From: Tetramitus jugosus
Taxonomy: Eukaryota; Protista; Heterolobosea
Assembly (NCBI GenBank): GCA_937625935.1
Contig: OW569373.1
Coordinates: 1 to 64,000, forward strand
Direction of reading: 5' to 3'
Length of the DNA: 64,000 nucleotides
The position numbers and the translations under genes are program-made. Position 1 is the stretch's first letter. Each line of letters starts with the position of its first letter. The notes under the pieces were generated by a model. It did not search any database and was not told where the DNA came from. It saw only the letters and a list, made by a program, of their open reading frames with translations. Positions 26,761-36,900 of the stretch are shown piece by piece.

Positions 26761-28010
26761 TCAAGGCAATATAGACGAACAACATTTTTGCATGACAAGA
26801 GTTGAATGGATTGATGCAACAAATGATTGAATGGATCGATAGTACAACAATGATTGAGAGTTGGACTGCTGGTGATTTGTGCTCTTTTGAATTCTGAGAG
26901 GCCTAGACTGGAAACATTCAATTCCATTGGAAAGGATAATAGTTACCAACCTACCACTAAGGTGCGTGGGGAAAATAATTAGGCTCATATTAAAATGAGC
27001 CTAATGTTGCATGTTTTCACTATTTCTTCTTGAGCATCAGCACTTCTACCATGCACTACACTGATGAATTTCGCCTTGAAATCCATGTTATTTGAGGTCA
27101 ATGATTGTTTGAGAACAGTTTGGCAATGCTATTCTCTATTGACACATAGCTTTCCTTGATACTAGGACGTTTTGTGAATGTCGACTCTCCTAATTTATCA
27201 CCTGAACAAATGCATAGCACTTCTGGTCTATGACACACATTATACTCATTTGGGTTGTTGGCAGTGAATTTGGTGACTGCAATCTCCCATCACAATCATT
27301 CTTTTTGGAGTCATTTATCTTGGGATCAGACAGGGGTTGGAAACACTAAATCGGGGGCATCACCGGACTTGCTGCGGGCGTTGGAAAATGAATTTTTACA
27401 AGTTTTTTCTTACAATTTCCAAAGAAATTAAAAAATTTAAACCTAAAAAATCTTTTATAACCTAAGCACTGTCGCTGGAACAAGAAATTCAGCAACACTC
27501 ACCTTCGAAACAACTTCACAAAAAAGGTGCCTACCCTACCAGAACAAACTTTAGGATATTCCAAAGTGCTGACTAAAATTGTTAATTTGTCTACATCAGA
27601 CTTCCCCTTATCTTCTAATACACATCAAAGGTGTTAAAAAAGTGTCTGAGGAACCCAAAGAATCCCTCAACTCGGTTTGTACAGAGGATTTGGGGATCAA
27701 AACCTTGAGTTCTACCTCCTATCAACGAATCGATGTCAGAGTCTCTAGATTTGTTCAGAGACAAGAATAGTGTCAATTACATTTTGAAGTTCTGTGGAGT
27801 TGATAGTTGCTCCTTGATTCCCTGATTCATGTCATATGATTAATTTACACTTGTTCATCACTCGAATTGATACTGAAATACAATGAGTGTTCAGACACTG
27901 TTCGTAGGACAGAAATTAGTCTCCTCTTTTCATACTTCGGGTCATCCAAATAATTCCAATAATCTACGACCACGAGTGTTCAAAATGCAAAAGTACGTCG
28001 CCCACCGAGG

Positions 28011-30103
28011 TTTATTTAGCCGCCAAATAAAGCGTTAATTGTTTTACAGTTTCCATCTCTCGTTTTTTTTTGTTTTTTAGAAAAAATCTCTAGTACAACT
28101 CCTTCACAGAATTGTAAACTTTCATAATTGTATATCCTCTATCCTCCTATATTTGGAGACAAATCCGACTTGCAACAATCTCGTTGTATACTCATTGTAT
28201 ACTGTCTACCTCAACATCATGGAGTTAAGGAAGTCAACTACCTGAGCCCTCGTTTTATTAATGACCCAACCAGTCAATGTTGTTTACGCAGCCAACTGTG
28301 AATGAATCGTTCCCAAGCAACACAATTATTTACAACAAACACATCCAAGACAACATCCAAAACCAGAACCTTGGTCAACAACTTCCTCAACCTATTGTAC
28401 ATATCTGTATTTTGACCTATTTTTACACCTGCACACTCTGTGGATGAGAGGATATATATGAATTCTTTGACTGATTTGAGAGCTTTTCTTGGTGCAACCT
28501 TCACCATCGATCGTTATCAAGCAATTAACTGCAGACATAAAAAAACAAAAGAACAAAAGTAATTGTGATTGTTTATTGGGCAGTGAAACAACAGTTTATT
28601 TAAATAGGAATGTAGAGGACTTGATGGTTTGATGTTTTGATGTATTGCTTTGATGAGGAACTGTTTTTGTTTGTTTGTTAGTTTGTTTGGTTTTATTTAA
28701 GGAGTTGATGTAAGATAATTGCTTTTGGAACAAAACAACAATAGTAATGGAAAACAATAAGTGGTGTGAAGCAGTAGGATACTTGATTGGAGCACTTAAT
28801 GCCATAGTTGATACCCAGAGACTCTCCTCTATCAAGAAACGATCAACCTCAGGAGCAACAGTGTGTCCCGGATCTAACATCCACCTTCCAGATGTTGCAA
28901 AGAAATGAGCAAGCTGCAAAGAATGATCAGATGAATGTTGTCGAGGACACTACCTATGTGGTTGAGGCAAGAGAAACAAGGAAAGGGGAACAGGACTGGT
29001 ATGGTCAGTCGACCATTCTGGCAATCGGCCGAGGAGATTCTCAAGACTGGGATGACTGTTAGATTCTATCAGCCCGAATCTGTTGTCCATAAGAAGTTTT
29101 CTCGAATGATCATCAACAAGATCAAAGGAGAGATGTGCCAGGTGATGGATTCTCGAGTGAACGAGTATGTAGCTAGCTGTGTGTTGATAGAGATACCAAA
29201 GGAGGAAGCGTATTTCATTGCTCCAACGAGAATCATACCCAGAGAGTCTGATCCTTCTCGACCCAGAGAAATCTTGGACTTCACTGAGCTTAACAAGTAC
29301 ATTCTAGAGGCGGATTGCAAACTACCAACACGCAAAGATCTAGTGTTGTTGGTCGAAAGATACTCCTATGCGGCCTCGATTGATATCAAATCGTGTTACA
29401 CCAACATCAAATTGGATGAGGCATTCCAGCCATATTGCTGTATTGGGTGGAGGAGCAAGGTCTACAAATTTACTCGAGTCCCTTTTGGAATCAAGTGTGC
29501 ACCGGCATGTTGCCAGCTGGTCACAAGCCATCTCTGCGAGGAGACTACAATAGTGTTGTATCTTGATGACTTCCTCTTGTTGGGCAACTCGGAGCAACAA
29601 GTATTATCTCGAGTTCGAGACCAAGTAACCACTCTCGAAGATAGAGGATTGCCTATCAATGTTACCAAGTCCATTCTGGTTCCAGCAAGAGCTAGAGTTT
29701 AGCGGATACAAGCTCTGTTTTGGAGGTCAAGTCAAGGGTGTTTACACTACAGATAAGCACTTGATGGATCTATCGTTGATGATCAAACTGATTTTGACGC
29801 AGGAGAGCGTTGAATTGAAGACCTGGCAAAGGTTCATGGGTAAGTATAACTGGTGTAGGGCTCTAAAGGAGGATGAGAAGGTGCATTCGAAGTTGGTTGC
29901 TCTGATGAATGAGCGAGACACCAACACTGATATGATAGAATTGTCGTTGACCATGTCGCTAGAGCAATGCTCCGCAATGTGGTAGCAAGATGTTCTCTTT
30001 CTTTTGATTTTTGATTGTATTTTATAGTGTGTTTATTGTAAATACATTGTAAAACTCGTTGTAAATAAAAAATCCGTCATAGAGCTCAGGAGACAAAAAG
30101 GCA
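28011..30103. mobile_element. RT/T5orf172 element copy 1 (decayed)
   Basis: Both ends shared with copy 3; frameshifted RT (28750-30013); about 350 bp deleted from the endonuclease gene; bounded by TCGCCCACCGAGG at 27998-28010 and 30104-30116. Confidence 0.9.
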
Positions 30104-30116
30104 TCGCCCACCGAGG

Positions 30117-30735
30117 TTTATTTAGCCGCCAAATAAAGCGTTAATTGTTTTACAGTTTCTATCTTTTTTTTTTTAGAGAAAAAAAATCTCTAGTACAACT
30201 CCTTCACAGAATTGTAAACTTTCATAATTGTTGAATGGTTTTTGTGGTAATTGTATATCCTCTATCCTCCTACATTTTGGAGACAATCCGACAAGCAACA
30301 ATCTCGTTGTATACTCGTTGTATACTGTCTACCTCAACATCATGGAGTTAAGGAAGTCAACTACCTGAGCCCTCGTTTTATTAATGACCCAACCATTTAA
30401 TGTTGTAGCTTTGAGATCCTCCTTCACTGATTCTACTGTTGTATCCTTCAACAGAAGACCCACATTGTATGCGTCGAGTATACAATGAGTGTGAAGACTG
30501 CTGGCGAGGAACTCTTCGAACCATGATCGCGGAGACTCAGTAAAGTACAACAACACTCTCTCAAGACCAGGAACCGAGACAACCATAAGATGAGGATGTT
30601 GTGGCAATGAGACCTGTGGCACTTGATTCACAAAAATGGAGAAGTGTCTTTTATGGTGTGTTTATTGTAAATACATTGTAAAACTCGTTGTAAATAAAAA
30701 GTCCGTCAAAAAGCTCAGACGGAGACAAAAGGACA
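30117..30735. mobile_element. RT/T5orf172 element copy 2 (619-bp internal-deletion derivative, non-autonomous)
   Basis: Left end and endonuclease C-terminus joined near 30645 to the ~90-bp right end; bounded by the 13-bp repeats at 30104 and 30736. Confidence 0.9.
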
Positions 30736-30787
30736 TCGCCCACCGAGGTTTATTTAGCCGCCAAATAAAGCGTTAATTGTTTTACAG

Positions 30788-30818
<31 letters not shown>

Positions 30819-30970
30819 GAAAAAAAAATCTCTAGTACAACTCCTTCACAGAATTGTAAACTTTCATAATTGCTGAATGGTTTTTGTGGTAATTGTATAT
30901 CTTCTATCCTCCTATATTTTGGAGACAATCCGACAAGCAACAATCTCGTTGTATACTCATTGTATACTGT

Positions 30971-31657
30971 CTACCTCAACATCATGGAGTTAAGGAAGTC
31001 AACTACCTGAGCCCTCGTTTTATTAATGACCCAACCATTCAATGTTGTAGCTCCGAGATCCTCCCTCACTGATTCTACTGTTGTATCCTTCAACAGAAGA
31101 CCCACATTGTATGCGTCAAGTATACAATGAGTGTGGAGACTGCTGGCGAGGAACTCTTCGAACCATGATCGCGGAGACTCAGTAAAATACAACAACACTC
31201 TCTCAATACCAGGAACCGAGACAACCATAAGATGAGGATGTTGTGGTAATGAGACCTGCGGTACTTGATTCACAAAAATGGAGAAATACCTCGATCGAAC
31301 AGGTACAAAAGCATTGCTATCCAATTGCATTCCAAAGCAATGTTTCAAGCACCAGATTGCCTCCTCTCTATTGGTGTCAAATACCTCCCCAGCAATAAGC
31401 CTGTTACGCAGCCAACTGTGAATGAATCGTTCCCAAGCAACACAATTATTTACAACAAACACATCCAAGACCACATCCAAAACCAGCACCTTGGTCAACA
31501 ACTTCCTCAATCTATTGTACATATCTGTACTTTGACCTATTTTAGCACCTGCACACTCTGTGGATGAGAGGATATATATGCATTCTTTGATTGATTTGAG
31601 AGTTTTTCTTGGTGCAACCTCACCATTGATCGTTATCAAGCAATTAACTGCAGACAT
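30971..31657 (-). CDS. T5orf172/MUG113-type (GIY-YIG superfamily) putative endonuclease
   Basis: CIYIL...AKIGQSTDMYNRLRKL...WERFIHSWLRNRLIAGEVF fits the YIYI..KIG..RL..E..H..GEWF pattern; an alternative upstream ATG is at 31708. Confidence 0.8.
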   Translation of the reverse strand: MSAVNCLITINGEVAPRKTLKSIKECIYILSSTECAGAKIGQSTDMYNRLRKLLTKVLVLDVVLDVFVVNNCVAWERFIHSWLRNRLIAGEVFDTNREEAIWCLKHCFGMQLDSNAFVPVRSRYFSIFVNQVPQVSLPQHPHLMVVSVPGIERVLLYFTESPRSWFEEFLASSLHTHCILDAYNVGLLLKDTTVESVREDLGATTLNGWVINKTRAQVVDFLNSMMLR

Positions 31658-31870
31658 AAAAAAACAAAAGAACAAGTAATTGTGATTGTTTATTGGACAT
31701 TGAAACAACAGTTTATTTAAATAGGAATGTAGAGGACTTGATGGGTTGATGTTTTGATGTATTACTTTGATGAGGAACTGTTTTTGTTTGTTTGTTAGTT
31801 TGTTTGGTTTTATTTAAGGAGTTGATGTGATGTAAGATAATTGCTTTTGAAAAAAAAAACAACAATAGTA

Positions 31871-33151
31871 ATGGAAAACAATAAGTGGCGTGAAGCAGTA
31901 GGATACTTGATTGGAGCACTTAATGCCATAGTTGATGCCCAGAGACTCTCCTCTATGGAATCAAGAAATGATCAACCTCAGGAGCAACAGTGTGTCCCGG
32001 ATTTAACATCCACCATCCAGATGTTGAAAAGAAATGAGCAAGCTACAAGGAATGATCAGATGAATGTTGTCGAGGACACTACCTATGTGGTTGAGGCAAG
32101 AGAAACAAGGAAAGGCAAGGGAAAGGGGAAGAACAGGGCTGGTATGATCAGTCGACCATTCTGGCAATCGGCCGAGGAGATTCTCAAGACTGGGATGACT
32201 GTTAGATTCTATCAGCCCGAATCTGTTGTCCGTAAGAAGTTGTCTCGAATGATCATCAACAAGATCAAAGGAGAGATGTGCCAGGTGATGGATTCTCGAG
32301 TGAACGAGTATGTAGCTAGCGGTGTGTTGATAGAGATACCAAAGGAGGAAGCGTATTTCATTGCTCCAATGAGAATCATACCCAGAGAGTCTGATCCTTC
32401 TCGACCCAGAGAAATCTTGGATTTCACTGAGCTCAACAAGTACATTCTAGAGGCGGATTGCAAACTACCAACACGCAAAGATCTAGTGTTGTTGGTCGAA
32501 AGATACTCCTATGCGGCCTCGATTGATATCAAATCGTGTTACACCAACATCAAATTGGATGAGGCATTTCAGCCATATTGCTGTATTGGGTGGAGGAGCA
32601 AGGTCTACAAATTTACTCGAGTCCCTTTTGGAATCAAGTGTGCACCGGCATGTTGCCAGCTGGTCACAAGCCATCTCTGCGAGGAAACTACAATAGTATA
32701 TCTTGATGACTTCCTTTTGTTGGGCAACTCGGAGCAACAAGTATTATCTCGAGTTCGAGACCAAGTGACCACTCTCGAAGATAGAGGATTGCCTATCAAT
32801 GTTACCAAGTCCATTCTGGTTCCTCAGCAAGAGTTAGAGTTTAGCGGATACAAACTCTGTTTTGGAGGTGAAGTCAAGGGTGTTTACACTACAGATAAGC
32901 ACTTGATGGATCTATCGTTGATGATCAAACTGATTTTGACGCAGGAGAGCGTTGAATTGAAGACCTGGCAAAGGTTCATGGGTAAGTATAACTGGTGCAG
33001 GGCTCTAAAGGAGGATGAGAAGGTGCATTCGAAGTTGGTTGCGCTGATGAATGAGCGAGACACCAACTCTGATAGAATTGTAGTCGACCACGTCGCTAGA
33101 GCAATGCTCAGCAATATGGTAGCAAGATGTTCTCTTTCTTTTGATTTTTGA
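31871..33151 (+). CDS. DIRS-like reverse transcriptase lacking RNase H (426 aa)
   Basis: REILDFTELN, IDIKSCYTNI, FTRVPFGIKCAP, VYLDDFLL, GLPINVTKSILVPQQELEFSGY, QRFMGKYNW; the ORF ends shortly after the thumb region. Confidence 0.9.
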   Translation: MENNKWREAVGYLIGALNAIVDAQRLSSMESRNDQPQEQQCVPDLTSTIQMLKRNEQATRNDQMNVVEDTTYVVEARETRKGKGKGKNRAGMISRPFWQSAEEILKTGMTVRFYQPESVVRKKLSRMIINKIKGEMCQVMDSRVNEYVASGVLIEIPKEEAYFIAPMRIIPRESDPSRPREILDFTELNKYILEADCKLPTRKDLVLLVERYSYAASIDIKSCYTNIKLDEAFQPYCCIGWRSKVYKFTRVPFGIKCAPACCQLVTSHLCEETTIVYLDDFLLLGNSEQQVLSRVRDQVTTLEDRGLPINVTKSILVPQQELEFSGYKLCFGGEVKGVYTTDKHLMDLSLMIKLILTQESVELKTWQRFMGKYNWCRALKEDEKVHSKLVALMNERDTNSDRIVVDHVARAMLSNMVARCSLSFDF

Positions 33152-33243
33152 TTGTATTTTATGGTGTGTTTATTGTAAATACATTGTAAAACTTGTTGTA
33201 AATAAAAAGTCCGTCAAAAAGGCTCAGGCGGAGACAAAAGGAT

Positions 33244-33316
33244 CGCCCACCGAGGGGCTCGAACCCTCGACCACAAGGTTAAGAGCCTTGCGCTCTACCG
33301 ACTGAGCTAGACGGGC
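33244..33316 (-). tRNA. tRNA-Lys (CTT)
   Basis: GCCCGTCTAGCTCAGTCGGTAGAGCGCAAGGCTCTTAACCTTGTGGTCGAGGGTTCGAGCCCCTCGGTGGGCG folds as a 73-nt cloverleaf. Confidence 0.96.
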
Positions 33317-34299: not shown

Positions 34300-36900
34300 A
34301 AAGCGCGAACAAAAAACACATGGAAACAAACGCAAACATTCCATCCTCAGCTGAGGCTAGGGAGTACTCCCGTTGAAGGGTATGCGGTATGGACAGTACA
34401 GAAGGTTGGGAGTAGCATCAACAAAAATGAGGTGGTGATCAAAGGTTCACAATGTCATAACACGGCACCAACAATTGCAAGAATGATCGGTACGAGATAC
34501 AAGGGTTGGGTCACCAGAGCCCATGTGAGAAGGTGGGAAAAAGGTCCGTTCATTGCTTGGGTCATGTGAAGGACGACAAACTGTATGAGTTTGTTGAAAC
34601 TTATAATGATTCAAAAAGAATCATGAATGCCTATGCCTCCATCAAGAGGGAAGTTGACGCGGAGAAAAAGTTGGTCATCCACAAGGTATTGGGAAAGTCA
34701 AGGGACTACATAGCCAAACTGGTCGGAGAAGAAAAGGTCAGACATGTTGAGGTCAAGGGCAACACTGCGTTTGTAACCATGACTTCTCAGTCTTATGCTC
34801 AAGCTGTCATAGGAGATAAGCAAATTTCAGCAGAGAAAAGTCCATACATACAAAGAAGCCAAGATCCTGTGAAGCTACTAACGAGAAAGTTTCAGAGAAC
34901 TACTGACACTTTGAAACAACAAATGGAGGAACTAATGAAGAGTCAGACAACTGGAGATGGAAATAAGTCTGATAGAGGAAAAGAACAGTGGGAAAAAGGC
35001 TGCCAAAGCAGTGAAAAGATCTAGTCGCCCAATCCAACCTACTATACTCACTGTCCTTGACTCTGAAGAAAAAGGGGAGGAAGATGCAACAATGGAAGCT
35101 GAAGTTATCACCCTAGTGCCCTGTGAAGGTTCTCGGCATAACCTTGACAGGGACATGACAGCAAACGGAGAGAATAGCGATGTGACCATGTTAGTAGAGA
35201 ACGGTGAGGTAGTTCCACGCTCCACAAAATGTCAGTGAGCCACCCGATGAACAAAATATGGAAGAACGAAAGAAGCTCTTAATTAGTGCTAGACGAGCTA
35301 AGAGGAGAGAGCGTGCTCTCTCGGACAGCCAAGCACTCATTTACAACTACGCCGTACGAAGGGAGGACACCAAGAAAAGAGAATGGCAAGCGTGGAACCA
35401 AGAAGGGTGATGCTACTAACCCGGCTAACTACAGACCAATATGCCTCCTGAGTACTGTGTCGAAACTGTACACCAAGTTGATTAATAGAAGAATCTCTGT
35501 TGCTGCTGAGACAGGAGGGATTTTCTCTAATGTTCAAGGTGGCGGCAGAAAGTTCCGGGACATTCGGGAGAAGCTGTCCATAGTAAGAGGAATCATTGAC
35601 CATGCCAACAGGGAAAACAAGCAACTGTTCCTGCTTTTGACAGACATATCTAAAGCGTTTGATTCGGTACCACCCAACGCAATCAAATTCTTTGAATTCC
35701 CTGACAATGTTGTCAGATTGGTGAGTGGAATGGTGGAGAACAATTTTGCTGGTGTTCTGACGAGAGCTGTCTCAAGAAGGTTTCCTATCGGAAAGGGAAC
35801 AAGGCAAGGTGACTCTTTATCACCTACCACATACATTCTAGTGCACCACGGTGTTGATGTATGTTGACAGGAAGGTACAAGGTTACCCGAGCTATGTCTC
35901 AAGGATTGTGGAACGCGGCCTACATCGACGATTGCAATTTGTTCGCCGAATCCAGGGCAGATATTGAGCGTGCTGCACAGGCGATGTCGGAGGTTCTATC
36001 GTCACTACGGATGTCGATGCACCCTGACAATCTTGAACTGTATGTGCGACAAATGGAGAAGGACACAGGGTATGATATAGAGGTGGATGGAACGGTTGTT
36101 CCCGCGAGAGACAGTTCTCGAGTCTTTCGAGCACTGGGTCTTTTCACCAACCTAAAGGGGAATACAAAACAACAAATCGAGCAGGCATGGAACAAGTCCC
36201 AAAGAGTGGTGACTAGGTTGAAAATGATGAAGCTTACTCCCAGACAGGTGGCAAGAGTAGTGAACACATGTATTCACCCTTGAAACCAAGACGTCTGAGT
36301 TCACTGATTGGACTGATGGATGGATACTCAAGGTGAACAGACTGGGTAGGATGCTGGTCAAGCACGGATCGGTAGCAATGAAACCCATTCCCTCCGAACT
36401 GCTCCCGGTCAGCAGTGATCATGGATCGATCGGTCTGAACGATACAGAAGAAACTATCACGACTCAAACCGCCTGGTTTGTCGGTACCATGGTGTCTGGT
36501 AAGAGAGATACCGAAGAGAAACAGCTGTTGCTTGACACGCTTGAGGAGATCAAGCAAAAACAAACATTCCAATCAGAGAATGTATTTCAGTCAAGCAAAG
36601 GACCGAAAGAATCTCGGGAATGGGGCTCTACTGGCTACAAGCTGATGCAATACGAAGCGGTGATGACTTCAGCTTTCTGAAGTACCCACACAGGATCAAT
36701 AGGCAAGGGGAGTGGTTCTATGCTCAAGTGCGTAGCGGTACTCTTCACACAAAAGAGACAAAGCGCTGTCTATATGGCAAGGATGGCTTCTATCAACCGG
36801 ATTTCCCTCGCGTCCCCGTCTCCGGAGCGAATCTCCGAACTCGAACCTTCGACTCCGTCTACTGTCGATGACTGAGTCACCCTAGAGCTAACCAACAACA
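34300..36900 (+). mobile_element. Degenerate near-full-length non-LTR retrotransposon (ORF1 with RRM-like region, ORF2 RT); boundaries approximate
   Basis: ORF1 pieces from the ATG at 34320 (VEVKGNTAFVTM); RT motifs NYRPICLL, TDISKAFDSV, GTRQGDSLSP, AYIDD; multiple stops and deletions. Confidence 0.88.

Follow-up and report, generated by a model that had tools for sequence, protein, structure and literature searches.

A two-gene element with a DIRS-like reverse transcriptase and a T5orf172-type nuclease occupies tRNA genes of Tetramitus jugosus and may be a retroelement

Introduction

In compact genomes, Ty1, Ty3, TRE5-A and DGLT-A use tRNA genes as harmless landing sites (PMC5006619). These elements bind Pol III factors and thereby insert outside the gene, at set distances from it. 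The integrative elements found at tRNA 3' ends in bacteria and archaea are DNA elements using tyrosine or serine integrases. R2 (28S rDNA), SLACS/CRE (spliced-leader genes) and Utopia/Keno (U2) each have a fixed safe site within a multicopy RNA gene. Penelope-like elements combine a reverse transcriptase (RT) and a GIY-YIG endonuclease in one fusion. T5orf172 proteins, known from phages, act as homing-type nucleases, in which a catalytic domain is combined with a separate, presumably DNA-binding part and by which conserved essential genes are targeted (PMC10448857). For their spread the free-standing phage genes rely on DNA repair alone; their binding domains are of the zinc-finger CapR type.

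Here we describe a locus in a stretch of 64,000 nucleotides from Tetramitus jugosus (the window). A sequence-only reading had proposed that a tRNA-Lys gene carries a minimal two-gene retroelement here. We somewhat favor the view that the locus belongs to an autonomous, tRNA-gene-specific retroelement family with a divergent DIRS-clade RT lacking RNase H and a separate T5orf172 nuclease.

Results

Three units lie head to tail at the 3' end of a tRNA-Lys(CTT) gene (33244..33316, minus strand), one of them intact (2494 bp) and two decayed. The tRNA gene itself is intact and identical to the other 24 full genomic copies. A 13-mer had been claimed to occur at all four junctions, and TCGCCCACCGAGG is indeed present exactly four times, at 27998, 30104, 30736 and 33243. 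By chance 0.02 copies are expected, and four were reached in 0 of 100 shuffles. The 13-mer consists of the reverse complement of tRNA-Lys positions 62-73 (12 nt) and 1 further nt. The distal copy (27998..28010) adjoins the original tRNA-Lys gene's natural 3' flank (27975..27997, minus strand), which reads ACGTACTTTTGCATTTTG in tRNA orientation and contains the T-runs of a Pol III terminator. This flank fits the pattern A(T/C)GTNNTTTTG, found at most of 17 empty tRNA-Lys genes. Unit 1 (28011..30103, plus strand) is old and decayed: its nuclease gene has lost an internal part and its RT frame is disrupted. It shares 87-95% identity with unit 3. After the second 13-mer (30104..30116) follows unit 2 (30117..30735, plus strand), a 619-bp internal-deletion derivative that kept both termini and joins element positions 1-550 to 2418-2507. 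The third 13-mer (30736..30748) precedes unit 3 (30749..33242, plus strand), the intact element, and the fourth (33243-33255) comprises the last 12 nt of tRNA-Lys. Hence, the array is polar, with the intact young copy next to the tRNA. A second full copy, on contig 15 (384826-387317), is 99.2% identical to unit 3.

As described before, unit 3 contains two divergent genes, for the RT and the T5orf172-type protein, with start codons 213 bp apart. The spacer between them (31658..31870) is presumed, from its geometry, to act as a bidirectional promoter. The left terminal region (30749..30970) starts with a conserved TTTATT, equivalent to AATAAA on the nuclease-sense strand and placed at the boundary; in lineages A, B and Asn this motif is separated from the repeat by 0-5 nt. 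The same region has a T-run that differs in length among copies, and a small A/T hairpin. The right terminal region (33152..33242) has AATAAA some 40 nt before the end and a variable joint to the repeat; its final ~11 nt mimic the 3' flank that naturally follows tRNA-Lys and provide the tRNA with a TTTT terminator. Neither LTRs nor split direct repeats were found in the element, in line with the earlier claim, and the same holds for terminal inverted repeats and ribozymes. Likewise, RNase H, integrase and protease gave no match at E <= 1 in the profile search.

The RT gene (31871-33151, plus strand) encodes 426 aa without RNase H, matches Pfam RVT_1 (E = 5e-19) and contains the motifs VPFGIKCAP, YLDD and INVTKSILVPQQELEF. 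The proposed DIRS-like nature of this RT was borne out by phylogeny: the family forms a clade (support 99) nested in a 115-row clade (support 99), which unites all RTs linked to Dam or a recombinase and stands apart from integrase-bearing Ty3/gypsy rows. Distant RT matches have a Phage_integrase gene or a Dam gene as neighbor. The RT falls inside the Dam-methylase/tyrosine-recombinase-linked (DIRS-like) RTs.

The partner gene (30971-31657, minus strand) encodes 228 aa, with a nuclease domain at about residues 26-105 followed by a conserved orphan C-terminal half, for which no recognizable fold or family was found. Its assignment to the T5orf172 subfamily of GIY-YIG nucleases agrees with the invariant motif residues Y28, K39-I-G41, R49, E76, H80 and E91. 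Of the two Pfam families expected for this protein, PF10544 scored above its cut-off (E = 3e-5), whereas PF13455 (2.7e-4) remained just under it, with 21.9 bits against 22.3. T5orf172/MUG113 clusters reached an Atlas feature score of 0.91 to the 228-aa protein; its structure model is poor (pLDDT 49). Both genes are under purifying selection (dN/dS 0.08-0.3), with values of 0.08-0.29 for the nuclease gene and ~0.1 for the RT in comparison with lineage B.

Site specificity for the tRNA gene, as put forward in the sequence-only reading, extends to the whole genome. Wherever a genomic copy kept its tRNA-side end, this end borders directly on a tRNA-Lys gene or on a junction between units. Lys-lineage copies are spread over at least nine contigs, each time at the same tRNA position, and occupy 8 of 26 CTT genes (7 full and 1 partial) and 2 of 6 TTT genes; the 17 empty tRNA-Lys genes that were checked are free of the element. 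Many copies are fragmentary. A non-autonomous derivative of ~600 bp with identical breakpoints is present at two tRNA-Lys loci, and mosaic copies combine a lineage-A nuclease gene with a divergent RT gene. Every genomic RT match co-locates with a nuclease match. The left joint, CCGAGG directly followed by TTTATTT, is invariant, and the right joint varies (GGACAT, GGAT, GGATTAT, GGCAT, GTACAT, GGACA). Copy depth in DNA contigs is ~4-6x the single-copy level and thus gives no sign of abundant free DNA. The element might have been a deleted DIRS element, yet the genome contains no longer copy with RNase H or recombinase, and no Pfam match to the tyrosine recombinase PF00589.

The two-gene layout is conserved in at least four lineages: A, the recombinant C, B and an Asn lineage. 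Lineage B has the same two genes as the Lys element (62% and about 65-70% aa identity), occupies 3 of 7 tRNA-Trp genes in T. jugosus and sits at tRNA-Trp position 14/15, with a 14-mer, the first 14 nt of the gene, on both sides. On contig 16, a TRE5-like LINE is located ~45 nt upstream of tRNA-Trp within an older B copy, and a newer B copy was inserted at tRNA-Trp after the LINE; this sequence of events happened twice, in keeping with a live tRNA gene. Three separate metagenome assemblies contributed contigs with the Asn lineage (RT 48%, nuclease 54-57% identity). In L046 a 24-nt repeat of the tRNA-Asn 3' end flanks the element, L067 shows a head-to-tail joint, and L078 and L079 have a complete tRNA-Asn beside the element. 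Consequently, the proposed preference for tRNA 3' ends stands for the Lys and Asn lineages and fails for the Trp lineage, which uses the 5' end.

Unequal exchange can produce tandem repeats, and with so many fragmentary copies one could imagine that a dead, deleted DIRS-type element, by chance beside a tRNA, was multiplied by local duplication or unequal crossing-over and that no distinct mobile family exists. We consider this extremely improbable. It is already contradicted by dispersed, position-specific and conserved copies: they occur at one and the same tRNA position on at least nine contigs, the two full copies on different contigs are nearly the same, and both genes are intact and constrained. 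Moreover, the layout recurs at a different tRNA in DNA of other organisms, and the genome holds no longer parent copy.

The 13-mer had been read as a target duplication. It is present at all four junctions as claimed, but our findings argue that the element itself brings at least part of it. In the Lys lineage the right end reads ATGTCCTTTTG... in tRNA orientation, compared to ATGTC(C/G)TTTTG in natural flanks. In lineage B the last ~45 nt resemble one natural tRNA-Trp 5' flank, and this resemblance is absent from the other three empty tRNA-Trp genes. The repeat measures 13 (Lys), 14 (Trp) and 24 bp (Asn), and its boundary coincides with the mature tRNA end in every lineage. Since the tRNA-side end of the element mimics the natural flank, the repeat is probably element-borne homology and more than just a staggered-cut duplication.

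Discussion

Beyond the anatomy, site specificity, conservation of both genes, RT clade, flank mimicry and array polarity observed here, we infer an RNA intermediate, cleavage by the nuclease and pairing-guided joining. In the retroelement model that we favor, one end of the element would bear, in each lineage, a short copy of the terminus of its target tRNA gene (12-13 nt from the 3' end for tRNA-Lys, 14 nt from the 5' end for tRNA-Trp and 24 nt from the 3' end for tRNA-Asn) and, beside it, an imitation of the natural flank of that gene. The nuclease would cut an intact tRNA gene in or next to the terminal segment, and a DNA copy of element RNA, made by the RT, would be joined via pairing of the element-borne segment with the cut gene. 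In the simplest form of priming, an RNA with the repeat at its end would be reverse-transcribed from the cut DNA end. The outcome would be one complete, still transcribable tRNA gene together with the element and a residual, partial copy of the tRNA end. Head-to-tail arrays would grow beside the tRNA because the target is regenerated at each insertion. Priming or pairing at one end, with less exact completion of the other, would be expected to give a precise left and a variable right joint.

Several observations complicate this scheme. Relative to the tRNA, the element is oriented differently in different lineages, and one strand-specific priming scheme therefore cannot account for all three. 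The missing RNase H counts against an RNA-based mechanism. Truncated copies flanked by the repeat, usual for target-primed elements, are absent among the copies, and the internal-deletion derivatives that keep both ends suit DNA-level or circle-based insertion equally well. Since the two genes point outward, with AATAAA near their own ends, no ordinary mRNA should span the whole unit; a full-length template would have to come from a circle, from a promoter outside the element or from read-through across a tandem joint.

The need of outward-facing genes for a circle or tandem joint to give unit-length RNA also fits a DIRS-style cycle with a replaced recombinase, which we regard as possible. Here, an RT-made closed DNA circle, with one att-like tRNA core placed between the right and left ends, would insert into the identical core of the tRNA gene, either through cleavage of both cores by the nuclease and ligation or through host recombination, so that the element ends up between two cores. 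Known members of the DIRS-like RT clade use circular intermediates (PMC5006619). There is exactly one repeat per head-to-tail joint, in the window and in metagenome contig L067, although a contig joint cannot distinguish a circle from a tandem array. As in bacterial islands, selection acting on a tRNA piece carried by the element would account for repeats of 13, 14 and 24 that end at the mature tRNA end. Flank mimicry sits beside the core, and deletion derivatives retain both ends with no repeat-bearing terminal truncations seen. On the contrary, the element has no recombinase, PF00589 is without a match in the genome, and there is no internal complementary region or split repeat for building a circle. 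DNA contig depth is not above the chromosomal copy number. The heterogeneous right joint is unlike conservative recombination, but sloppy circle closure could produce it.

We think it unlikely that the element spreads by homing at the DNA level, with the T5orf172 protein breaking empty tRNA genes, repair copying an occupied paralogous locus and the RT serving another purpose. Phage T5orf172 proteins act as homing-type nucleases (PMC10448857), and 25 identical tRNA-Lys genes with mostly similar short 3' flanks would offer homology on both sides of a break, namely the tRNA body on one side and the short repeat plus conserved flank on the other. The shared deletion derivative at two loci and the mosaics of lineage-A nuclease gene and divergent RT gene are compatible with such copying. 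However, the RT is intact, under purifying selection in every lineage and always paired with the nuclease gene, and the homology on the distal side amounts to only 12-24 bp. Furthermore, unrelated tRNA families (Lys, Trp, Asn) and both gene ends were reached, so new segments had to be captured, which is easier to picture via read-through RNA.

In the searchable literature we found no described family with this layout, in agreement with the earlier suggestion. The observation is real, and the two-gene, tRNA-rebuilding element is apparently undescribed; to call it a new class is a fair hypothesis that depends on mobility through RNA, as proposed above. The tyrosine-recombinase retroelements (DIRS-1 and other DIRS, Ngaro, PAT, VIPER) resemble it in RT clade, head-to-tail arrangements and the lack of LTRs. 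Compared to this group, the element is devoid of RNase H, methylase, tyrosine recombinase and a gag-like ORF, as well as of inverted terminal repeats with an internal complementary region and of split direct repeats, and it adds a target-derived flanking repeat, strict tRNA-gene specificity and an opposite-strand T5orf172 gene. Penelope-like elements also pair an RT with a GIY-YIG superfamily nuclease, frequently form partial tandem copies, have variable-length target repeats and lack RNase H. In contrast to them, the RT described here is not Penelope/telomerase-like and has DIRS-like nearest relatives, the nuclease is a separate opposite-strand gene of the T5orf172 subfamily with its own C-terminal domain, a hammerhead ribozyme is missing and insertion occurs inside tRNA genes.

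Phage T5orf172 genes share the two-part architecture of the nuclease and the choice of conserved essential genes, whereas the protein described here has an orphan C-terminal half and its gene is always paired with an RT. With Ty1, Ty3, TRE5-A and DGLT-A the element shares the tRNA gene as a harmless site in a compact genome, yet it lies inside the gene at a fixed nucleotide, and each lineage uses a single tRNA species. Bacterial and archaeal integrative elements likewise carry a tRNA end that restores the gene, with a flanking repeat that stops at the tRNA end; here, the host is eukaryotic, an RT is present, an integrase is not, and one lineage uses the tRNA 5' end. R2, SLACS/CRE and Utopia/Keno are similar in their fixed site within a multicopy RNA gene and in one precise and one variable junction, and both they and the present element may prime with target-homologous RNA ends. 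The element differs from them in RT clade, in the lack of a restriction-like or AP endonuclease and of a single sense-strand ORF, and in that the host gene is rebuilt instead of interrupted: the element supplies its own copy of the tRNA-end bases, and thus the tRNA gene stays whole.

The two genes and their products

The unit in the window carries two genes in divergent orientation, with a 213-bp spacer between the RT start and the nuclease start and an AATAAA near each gene's own element end. The RT gene (31871-33151, plus strand, 426 aa) matches RVT_1 at 5e-19. At E <= 1, its product matched neither RNase H nor integrase nor protease families, and the ORF contains no restriction-like or AP endonuclease domain. 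The RT ORF stops ~90 residues past the YLDD motif, and the RTs of the recombinant lineage C and of the Asn lineage, a sister at tRNA-Asn recovered from metagenome contigs, likewise lack RNase H. A third ORF is absent from the 2.5-kb unit.

The nuclease gene (30971-31657, minus strand) encodes a 228-aa protein, which the sequence-only reading had described as T5orf172-like. The Pfam search bore this out. PF10544 (T5orf172) was matched near full length (profile positions 2-98 of 101) with E = 3e-5 and 24.8 bits, above the curated cut-off of 20, and MUG113 was matched as well. T5orf172 is a subfamily within the GIY-YIG nucleases. In the protein atlas, T5orf172/MUG113 accounts for 26 of the 30 nearest clusters, with a feature score of 0.91. 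The motif residues are kept, since IY..(10)..KIG..R, E..H and GEVF are invariant in six nuclease sequences that share as little as 54% identity. The same holds for much of the C-terminal half, which resembles nothing known, with a blank PDB sequence search and no lead from the Atlas. The AlphaFold model shows a beta-beta-alpha-beta-alpha order in the N-terminal part; its confidence is low (mean pLDDT of 49), given that there are no more than six homologues, and does not permit a fold search.

Purifying selection acts on both genes: dN/dS lies at 0.08-0.29 in those comparisons whose synonymous changes are not saturated. Spread by DNA-only homing from occupied paralogues would leave the conserved RT without a role, and we regard this route as improbable.

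An array of units at the 3' end of tRNA-Lys

The 13-mer TCGCCCACCGAGG occurs four times in the window, at 27998, 30104, 30736 and 33243, compared to a mean of 0.02 in the shuffled window. ARAGORN and Rfam both place tRNA-Lys(CTT) at 33244-33316 on the minus strand, and the rightmost 13-mer copy is the reverse complement of tRNA-Lys positions 62-73 plus one base. The earlier claim that the repeat marks the unit junctions and the tRNA-Lys 3' end is thereby confirmed. The 13-mers delimit an intact unit (30749-33242), a 619-bp derivative (30117-30735) in which element positions 1-550 are fused to 2418-2507, and an older unit (28011-30103) whose two genes are damaged, one by a deletion and the other by a disrupted frame. 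Left of 27998, read in tRNA orientation, lies ACGTACTTTTGCATTTTG, which is the 3' flank type of most empty tRNA-Lys genes in the genome. Therefore, the array sits within a formerly ordinary tRNA-Lys gene. A complete tRNA-Lys now stands at the right end of the array, and a 12-nt stub of it is left at each joint.

A T-run near the left, nuclease-side end of the element varies from ~9 to 29 T between the units (30787-30815, 30164-30175 and 28063-28078). Read on the nuclease-sense strand, this tract is an internal stretch of A residues that precedes the element end by ~45 nt. LINE-like ORFs are located 5' of the window tRNA-Lys (33317 to ~38000), namely an ORF1-like protein (34506-35024) and an RVT_1 fragment (35286-35867). 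Unrelated retroelements therefore flank this tRNA-Lys on both sides.

Copies and occupancy in the genome

We searched the whole assembly (26.35 Mb, 56 contigs, ~40% GC, eukaryote-like), in which the window is contig 30, for further copies; all sequence comparisons were made on natural copies. A second full copy, 99.2% identical to the window element, is located on contig 15, and partial or rearranged copies were found on contigs 7, 8 (two), 18, 23, 35, 37 and 40. All copies with a preserved right end adjoin a tRNA-Lys 3' end or another unit, as expected from the proposed site-specific insertion. The partial copies on contigs 7, 18 and 37 lack the distal repeat. A ~600-bp derivative with identical breakpoints is present at two separate tRNA-Lys genes on contig 8.

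The genome contains 25 identical tRNA-Lys(CTT) genes and one partial gene, and seven full genes plus the partial one are occupied. A further 17 tRNA-Lys(CTT) genes were checked and are empty. For tRNA-Lys(TTT), old and truncated copies were found at two of six genes. Many of the dispersed tRNA-Lys(CTT) genes (loci L050-L066, the 17 empty ones) share the short 3' flank A(T/C)GTNNTTTTG, and many have an ACTCCGA(A/T)TCG-like motif ~30-40 nt upstream, which probably represents the ends of a tRNA-targeting LINE.

The copy on contig 40 (274900-277560; locus L033, 3900-6560) also lies at a tRNA-Lys gene. Its nuclease gene is 90% identical to that of the window, while its intact RT (410 aa) is just 61% identical. 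This mosaic copy indicates that the lineages recombine. The first ~230 bp of its left end are inverted, together with 9 nt of the repeat.

Sister lineages at tRNA-Trp and tRNA-Asn

Lineage B, the sister at tRNA-Trp, has a layout identical to that of the window element (nuclease 62%, RT about 65-70% identity) and is present at three of the seven tRNA-Trp genes. This lineage uses the 5' end of the tRNA: its right end is followed by GGGGGGTTAGCTCA, which equals tRNA-Trp positions 1-14, and after this 14-mer comes either the remainder of tRNA-Trp or the left end of the next unit. The Asn lineage is more distant (RT 48%, nuclease 54-57% identity to the window proteins). On one of its metagenome contigs, L046, a 24-nt direct repeat identical to the 3' end of tRNA-Asn(GTT) stands on both sides of the element; another, L067, reads right end, single 24-mer, left end; on L078 and L079 the nuclease gene adjoins a complete tRNA-Asn. 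The intact tRNA is found on the nuclease side in the Asn lineage and on the RT side in the Lys and Trp lineages. In all three alike, the repeat has one edge that matches the mature tRNA end to the nucleotide. This exact stop would be explained by a DIRS-like circle that carries one core and is inserted by cut-and-join, and so would the differing lengths of the repeat, the derivatives with internal deletions and the outward orientation of the genes; we judge this route less likely, and prefer a pairing-guided, RT-dependent insertion initiated by the nuclease.

A region upstream of one tRNA-Trp gene (contig 16, 352001-370000; L040 and L041) contains, in this order, an old B copy, a LINE, a B copy, a LINE, a B copy and tRNA-Trp. 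The TRE5-like LINE lies ~45 nt upstream of the tRNA-Trp start, within the right end of the older B copy. A younger B copy stands between this LINE-bearing remnant and tRNA-Trp, and the pattern is seen two times in succession. This LINE family targets active Pol III genes at a distance of about ~45 nt (PMC5006619). Its insertion within an older B copy at the usual distance indicates that the tRNA-Trp gene stayed active after B had inserted. New B copies entered at the intact tRNA-Trp and not at the 14-nt stubs, and recognition therefore needs more than the repeat alone. In its layers, the stack records the competition of two unrelated elements for a single tRNA gene.

Members of the two-gene family are rare: four RT and two nuclease matches were obtained from 5.8 billion proteins, and an exhaustive search of 1.84 billion representatives yielded eight RT matches below 1e-30, mostly fragments. 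The element was also found in soil, freshwater, groundwater and hot-spring metagenomes. One metagenome contig (L068, 1498-1558) carries a nuclease gene 96% identical to that of the window, ends in Illumina adapter sequence and has a left-end region unlike that of the window; it is probably a chimeric assembly. In other samples we observed RT relatives of 36-44% identity (L069, 250-1845; L072, 890-2119) with a GRF zinc finger in an upstream ORF or at the N-terminus. Neither a T5orf172 partner nor a nearby tRNA was found for these relatives, which may form a sister group with a different DNA-binding module.

Element ends, junctions and flank mimicry

The element end beside tRNA-Lys reads ATGTCCTTTTGTCTCC in tRNA orientation, and most empty tRNA-Lys genes continue with ATGTC(C/G)TTTTG or close variants. 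At the inner joints of the window array we found the flank version of the element and not the ACGTAC version of the locus. Therefore, this flank stretch travels with the element and is not a target duplication. In lineage B, the last ~45 nt resemble the 5' flank of one empty tRNA-Trp gene and are unlike that of the other three. By this mimicry of flanks, the element thus equips the gene it enters, with a Pol III terminator in the case of Lys and Asn and with a 5' flank in the case of Trp.

The two joints of the element differ in precision. The left joint, CCGAGG followed directly by TTTATTT, is identical in all copies, whereas the right joint shows small insertions and deletions that vary even between two 99%-identical copies. 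A TTTATT located 0-5 nt from the repeat is common to the Lys, Trp and Asn lineages and reads AATAAA on the nuclease-sense strand. With this signal at the left terminus, a nuclease-sense transcript would be expected to end in or just past the repeat.

We found no ribozyme, LTR or terminal inverted repeat in the element. Folds of the terminal ~105 nt at each end, on both strands and in three lineages, were not significant (z of -1.4 to +1.5). In the window (33200-33255, minus strand), the tRNA 3' 12-mer can pair with CTCCGCCTGAG of the element on the tRNA-sense strand. This stem has 12 bp including two G-U pairs, and where other copies have a C-to-T variant, the pairing is kept solely on the tRNA-sense strand. 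Taken as a whole, the fold falls short of significance (z = -1.15), and the hairpin of the tRNA 3' segment with the right end, which depends on G-U pairs on this strand, is a candidate structure. A minority head-to-tail joint from 33205 to 30750 was present in two runs (X1 and X4), one from the organism itself and one from a soil metagenome. This joint has GAAAAAGCCCG in place of the 13-mer and of the final ~37 nt of the right end, and may represent a variant lineage or a variant junction.

None of the public RNA runs carried the element. Four DNA runs, searched as assembled Logan contigs that can reveal neither transcripts nor ends nor circles, contained the element and variants of it at roughly 4-6-fold copy depth.

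A model for insertion

Taken together, the observations are compatible with a mobile element whose nuclease would open a specific tRNA gene, and in which a copy made by the RT would be joined to this gene via the short tRNA sequence that the element carries. In the form that we prefer, synthesis would be target-primed on an RNA ending in the repeat, which would explain why one joint is exact and the other ragged. We hold nuclease-initiated, RT-dependent and pairing-guided insertion in general, with target priming as its preferred form, to be somewhat better than an even bet.

Other roles for the repeat and the tRNA were rejected. The repeat is not a tRNA primer-binding site, as the complement of CCA is missing, and in the Trp and Asn lineages its sense is wrong. 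A template supplied by Pol III transcription running on from the tRNA was dismissed because T-runs directly follow the tRNA in every lineage. Element ends defined by ribozymes were discarded as well, since the Rfam scan found none.

A further-reaching version of pairing-guided insertion is tentative and rather doubtful at present. Here the carried tRNA segment, and not the protein, would set the address: the cut tRNA gene would pair with the 12-24-nt copy on the RNA or cDNA, and retargeting would occur by capture of a new tRNA end through read-through into a neighbour. The family would then be a naturally reprogrammable, homology-addressed and gene-repairing retroelement, and a new order among those of eukaryotes, in which a DIRS-type RT is combined with a T5orf172 nuclease. 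Should the carried segment prove to be the address, the element would attract interest as a compact system for site-specific insertion. Its size makes it amenable to dissection: no more than two genes are contained in 2.5 kb, two copies appear to be intact, and non-autonomous derivatives occur naturally.

Affinity of the RT and relation to known elements

The nearest RTs outside the family are 24-35% identical. The best 150 RT relatives among the 1.84 billion representatives are DIRS-like or Ty3/gypsy-linked: 42 have a Dam-like methylase region like that beside the protein hit P0003, 18 have a retroviral-type integrase and two match the recombinase beside the hit P0004. In a maximum-likelihood tree of 131 RT domains, which holds no named Penelope reference, the family forms one clade (support 99). 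It is nested in a 115-row clade (support 99) with all 41 Dam-linked and both recombinase-linked rows, and 14 integrase-bearing Ty3/gypsy rows fall outside. The nearest nine rows (P0024, P0076 and others) have neighbouring ORFs without recognisable domains, and two family-level RT relatives have the GRF zinc finger in place of the nuclease partner. The tree supports the DIRS-type assignment of the sequence-only reading, with labels taken from linked domains and not from curated DIRS, Ngaro or PAT references.

According to that reading, longer copies with RNase H and a tyrosine recombinase would refute it and make this a deleted DIRS. All RT matches in the genome are accompanied by an adjoining nuclease match, and none is longer than the 426-aa form. 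The tyrosine recombinase profile PF00589 matched nothing in the 26-Mb genome and matched in 14 of 14 control genomes, although this model could miss a very divergent eukaryotic recombinase. From these genome-wide searches we conclude that a deleted DIRS does not account for the family. Within the unit there are neither split direct repeats nor terminal repeats in inverted orientation with an internal complementary region. DIRS-type elements make no target duplication, and the unit has a 13-bp direct repeat of target sequence on either side.

Retroelement orders are defined by RT lineage and integration enzyme (integrase, tyrosine recombinase, AP or restriction-like endonuclease, fused GIY-YIG). 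With its DIRS-type RT and free-standing T5orf172 nuclease, the family would extend these combinations by a new one and would demonstrate that recombinase-type elements can exchange their integration module. Entering a tRNA gene and rebuilding it is a strategy known from bacterial islands, of which the family is a rare example in eukaryotes; its sister lineages target three different tRNAs and both gene ends. If RNA-mediated movement is shown, the family could rank as a new order. The full-text literature searched, which did not include Repbase and Dfam, holds no description of the two-gene layout.

R2-like non-LTR elements encode an endonuclease in the RT protein and leave 5'-truncated copies with target duplication, neither of which is seen here. 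Genomic islands of the att type that integrate at tRNA genes have an integrase gene and bring along a tRNA-end copy that restores the gene; in the window family, a restoring copy and a flank mimic are present and the integrase is absent (no PF00589 match). DIRS-type elements have the RT clade in common with the family, which lacks their other defining features, namely RNase H, tyrosine recombinase and DIRS-type repeats. Penelope-like elements likewise combine an RT with a GIY-YIG nuclease. However, their RT probably belongs to a different lineage, their nuclease is fused in one ORF, and they have ribozymes and no tRNA specificity. In the window family the nuclease has a gene of its own, which is encoded on the other strand and separated by 213 bp from the RT start, and an Rfam scan for hammerhead ribozymes at E <= 1 gave just the tRNA and sub-threshold chance matches. 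DIRS-type and Penelope-like elements are the closest known kinds, and we place the family among the nuclease-assisted retroelements.
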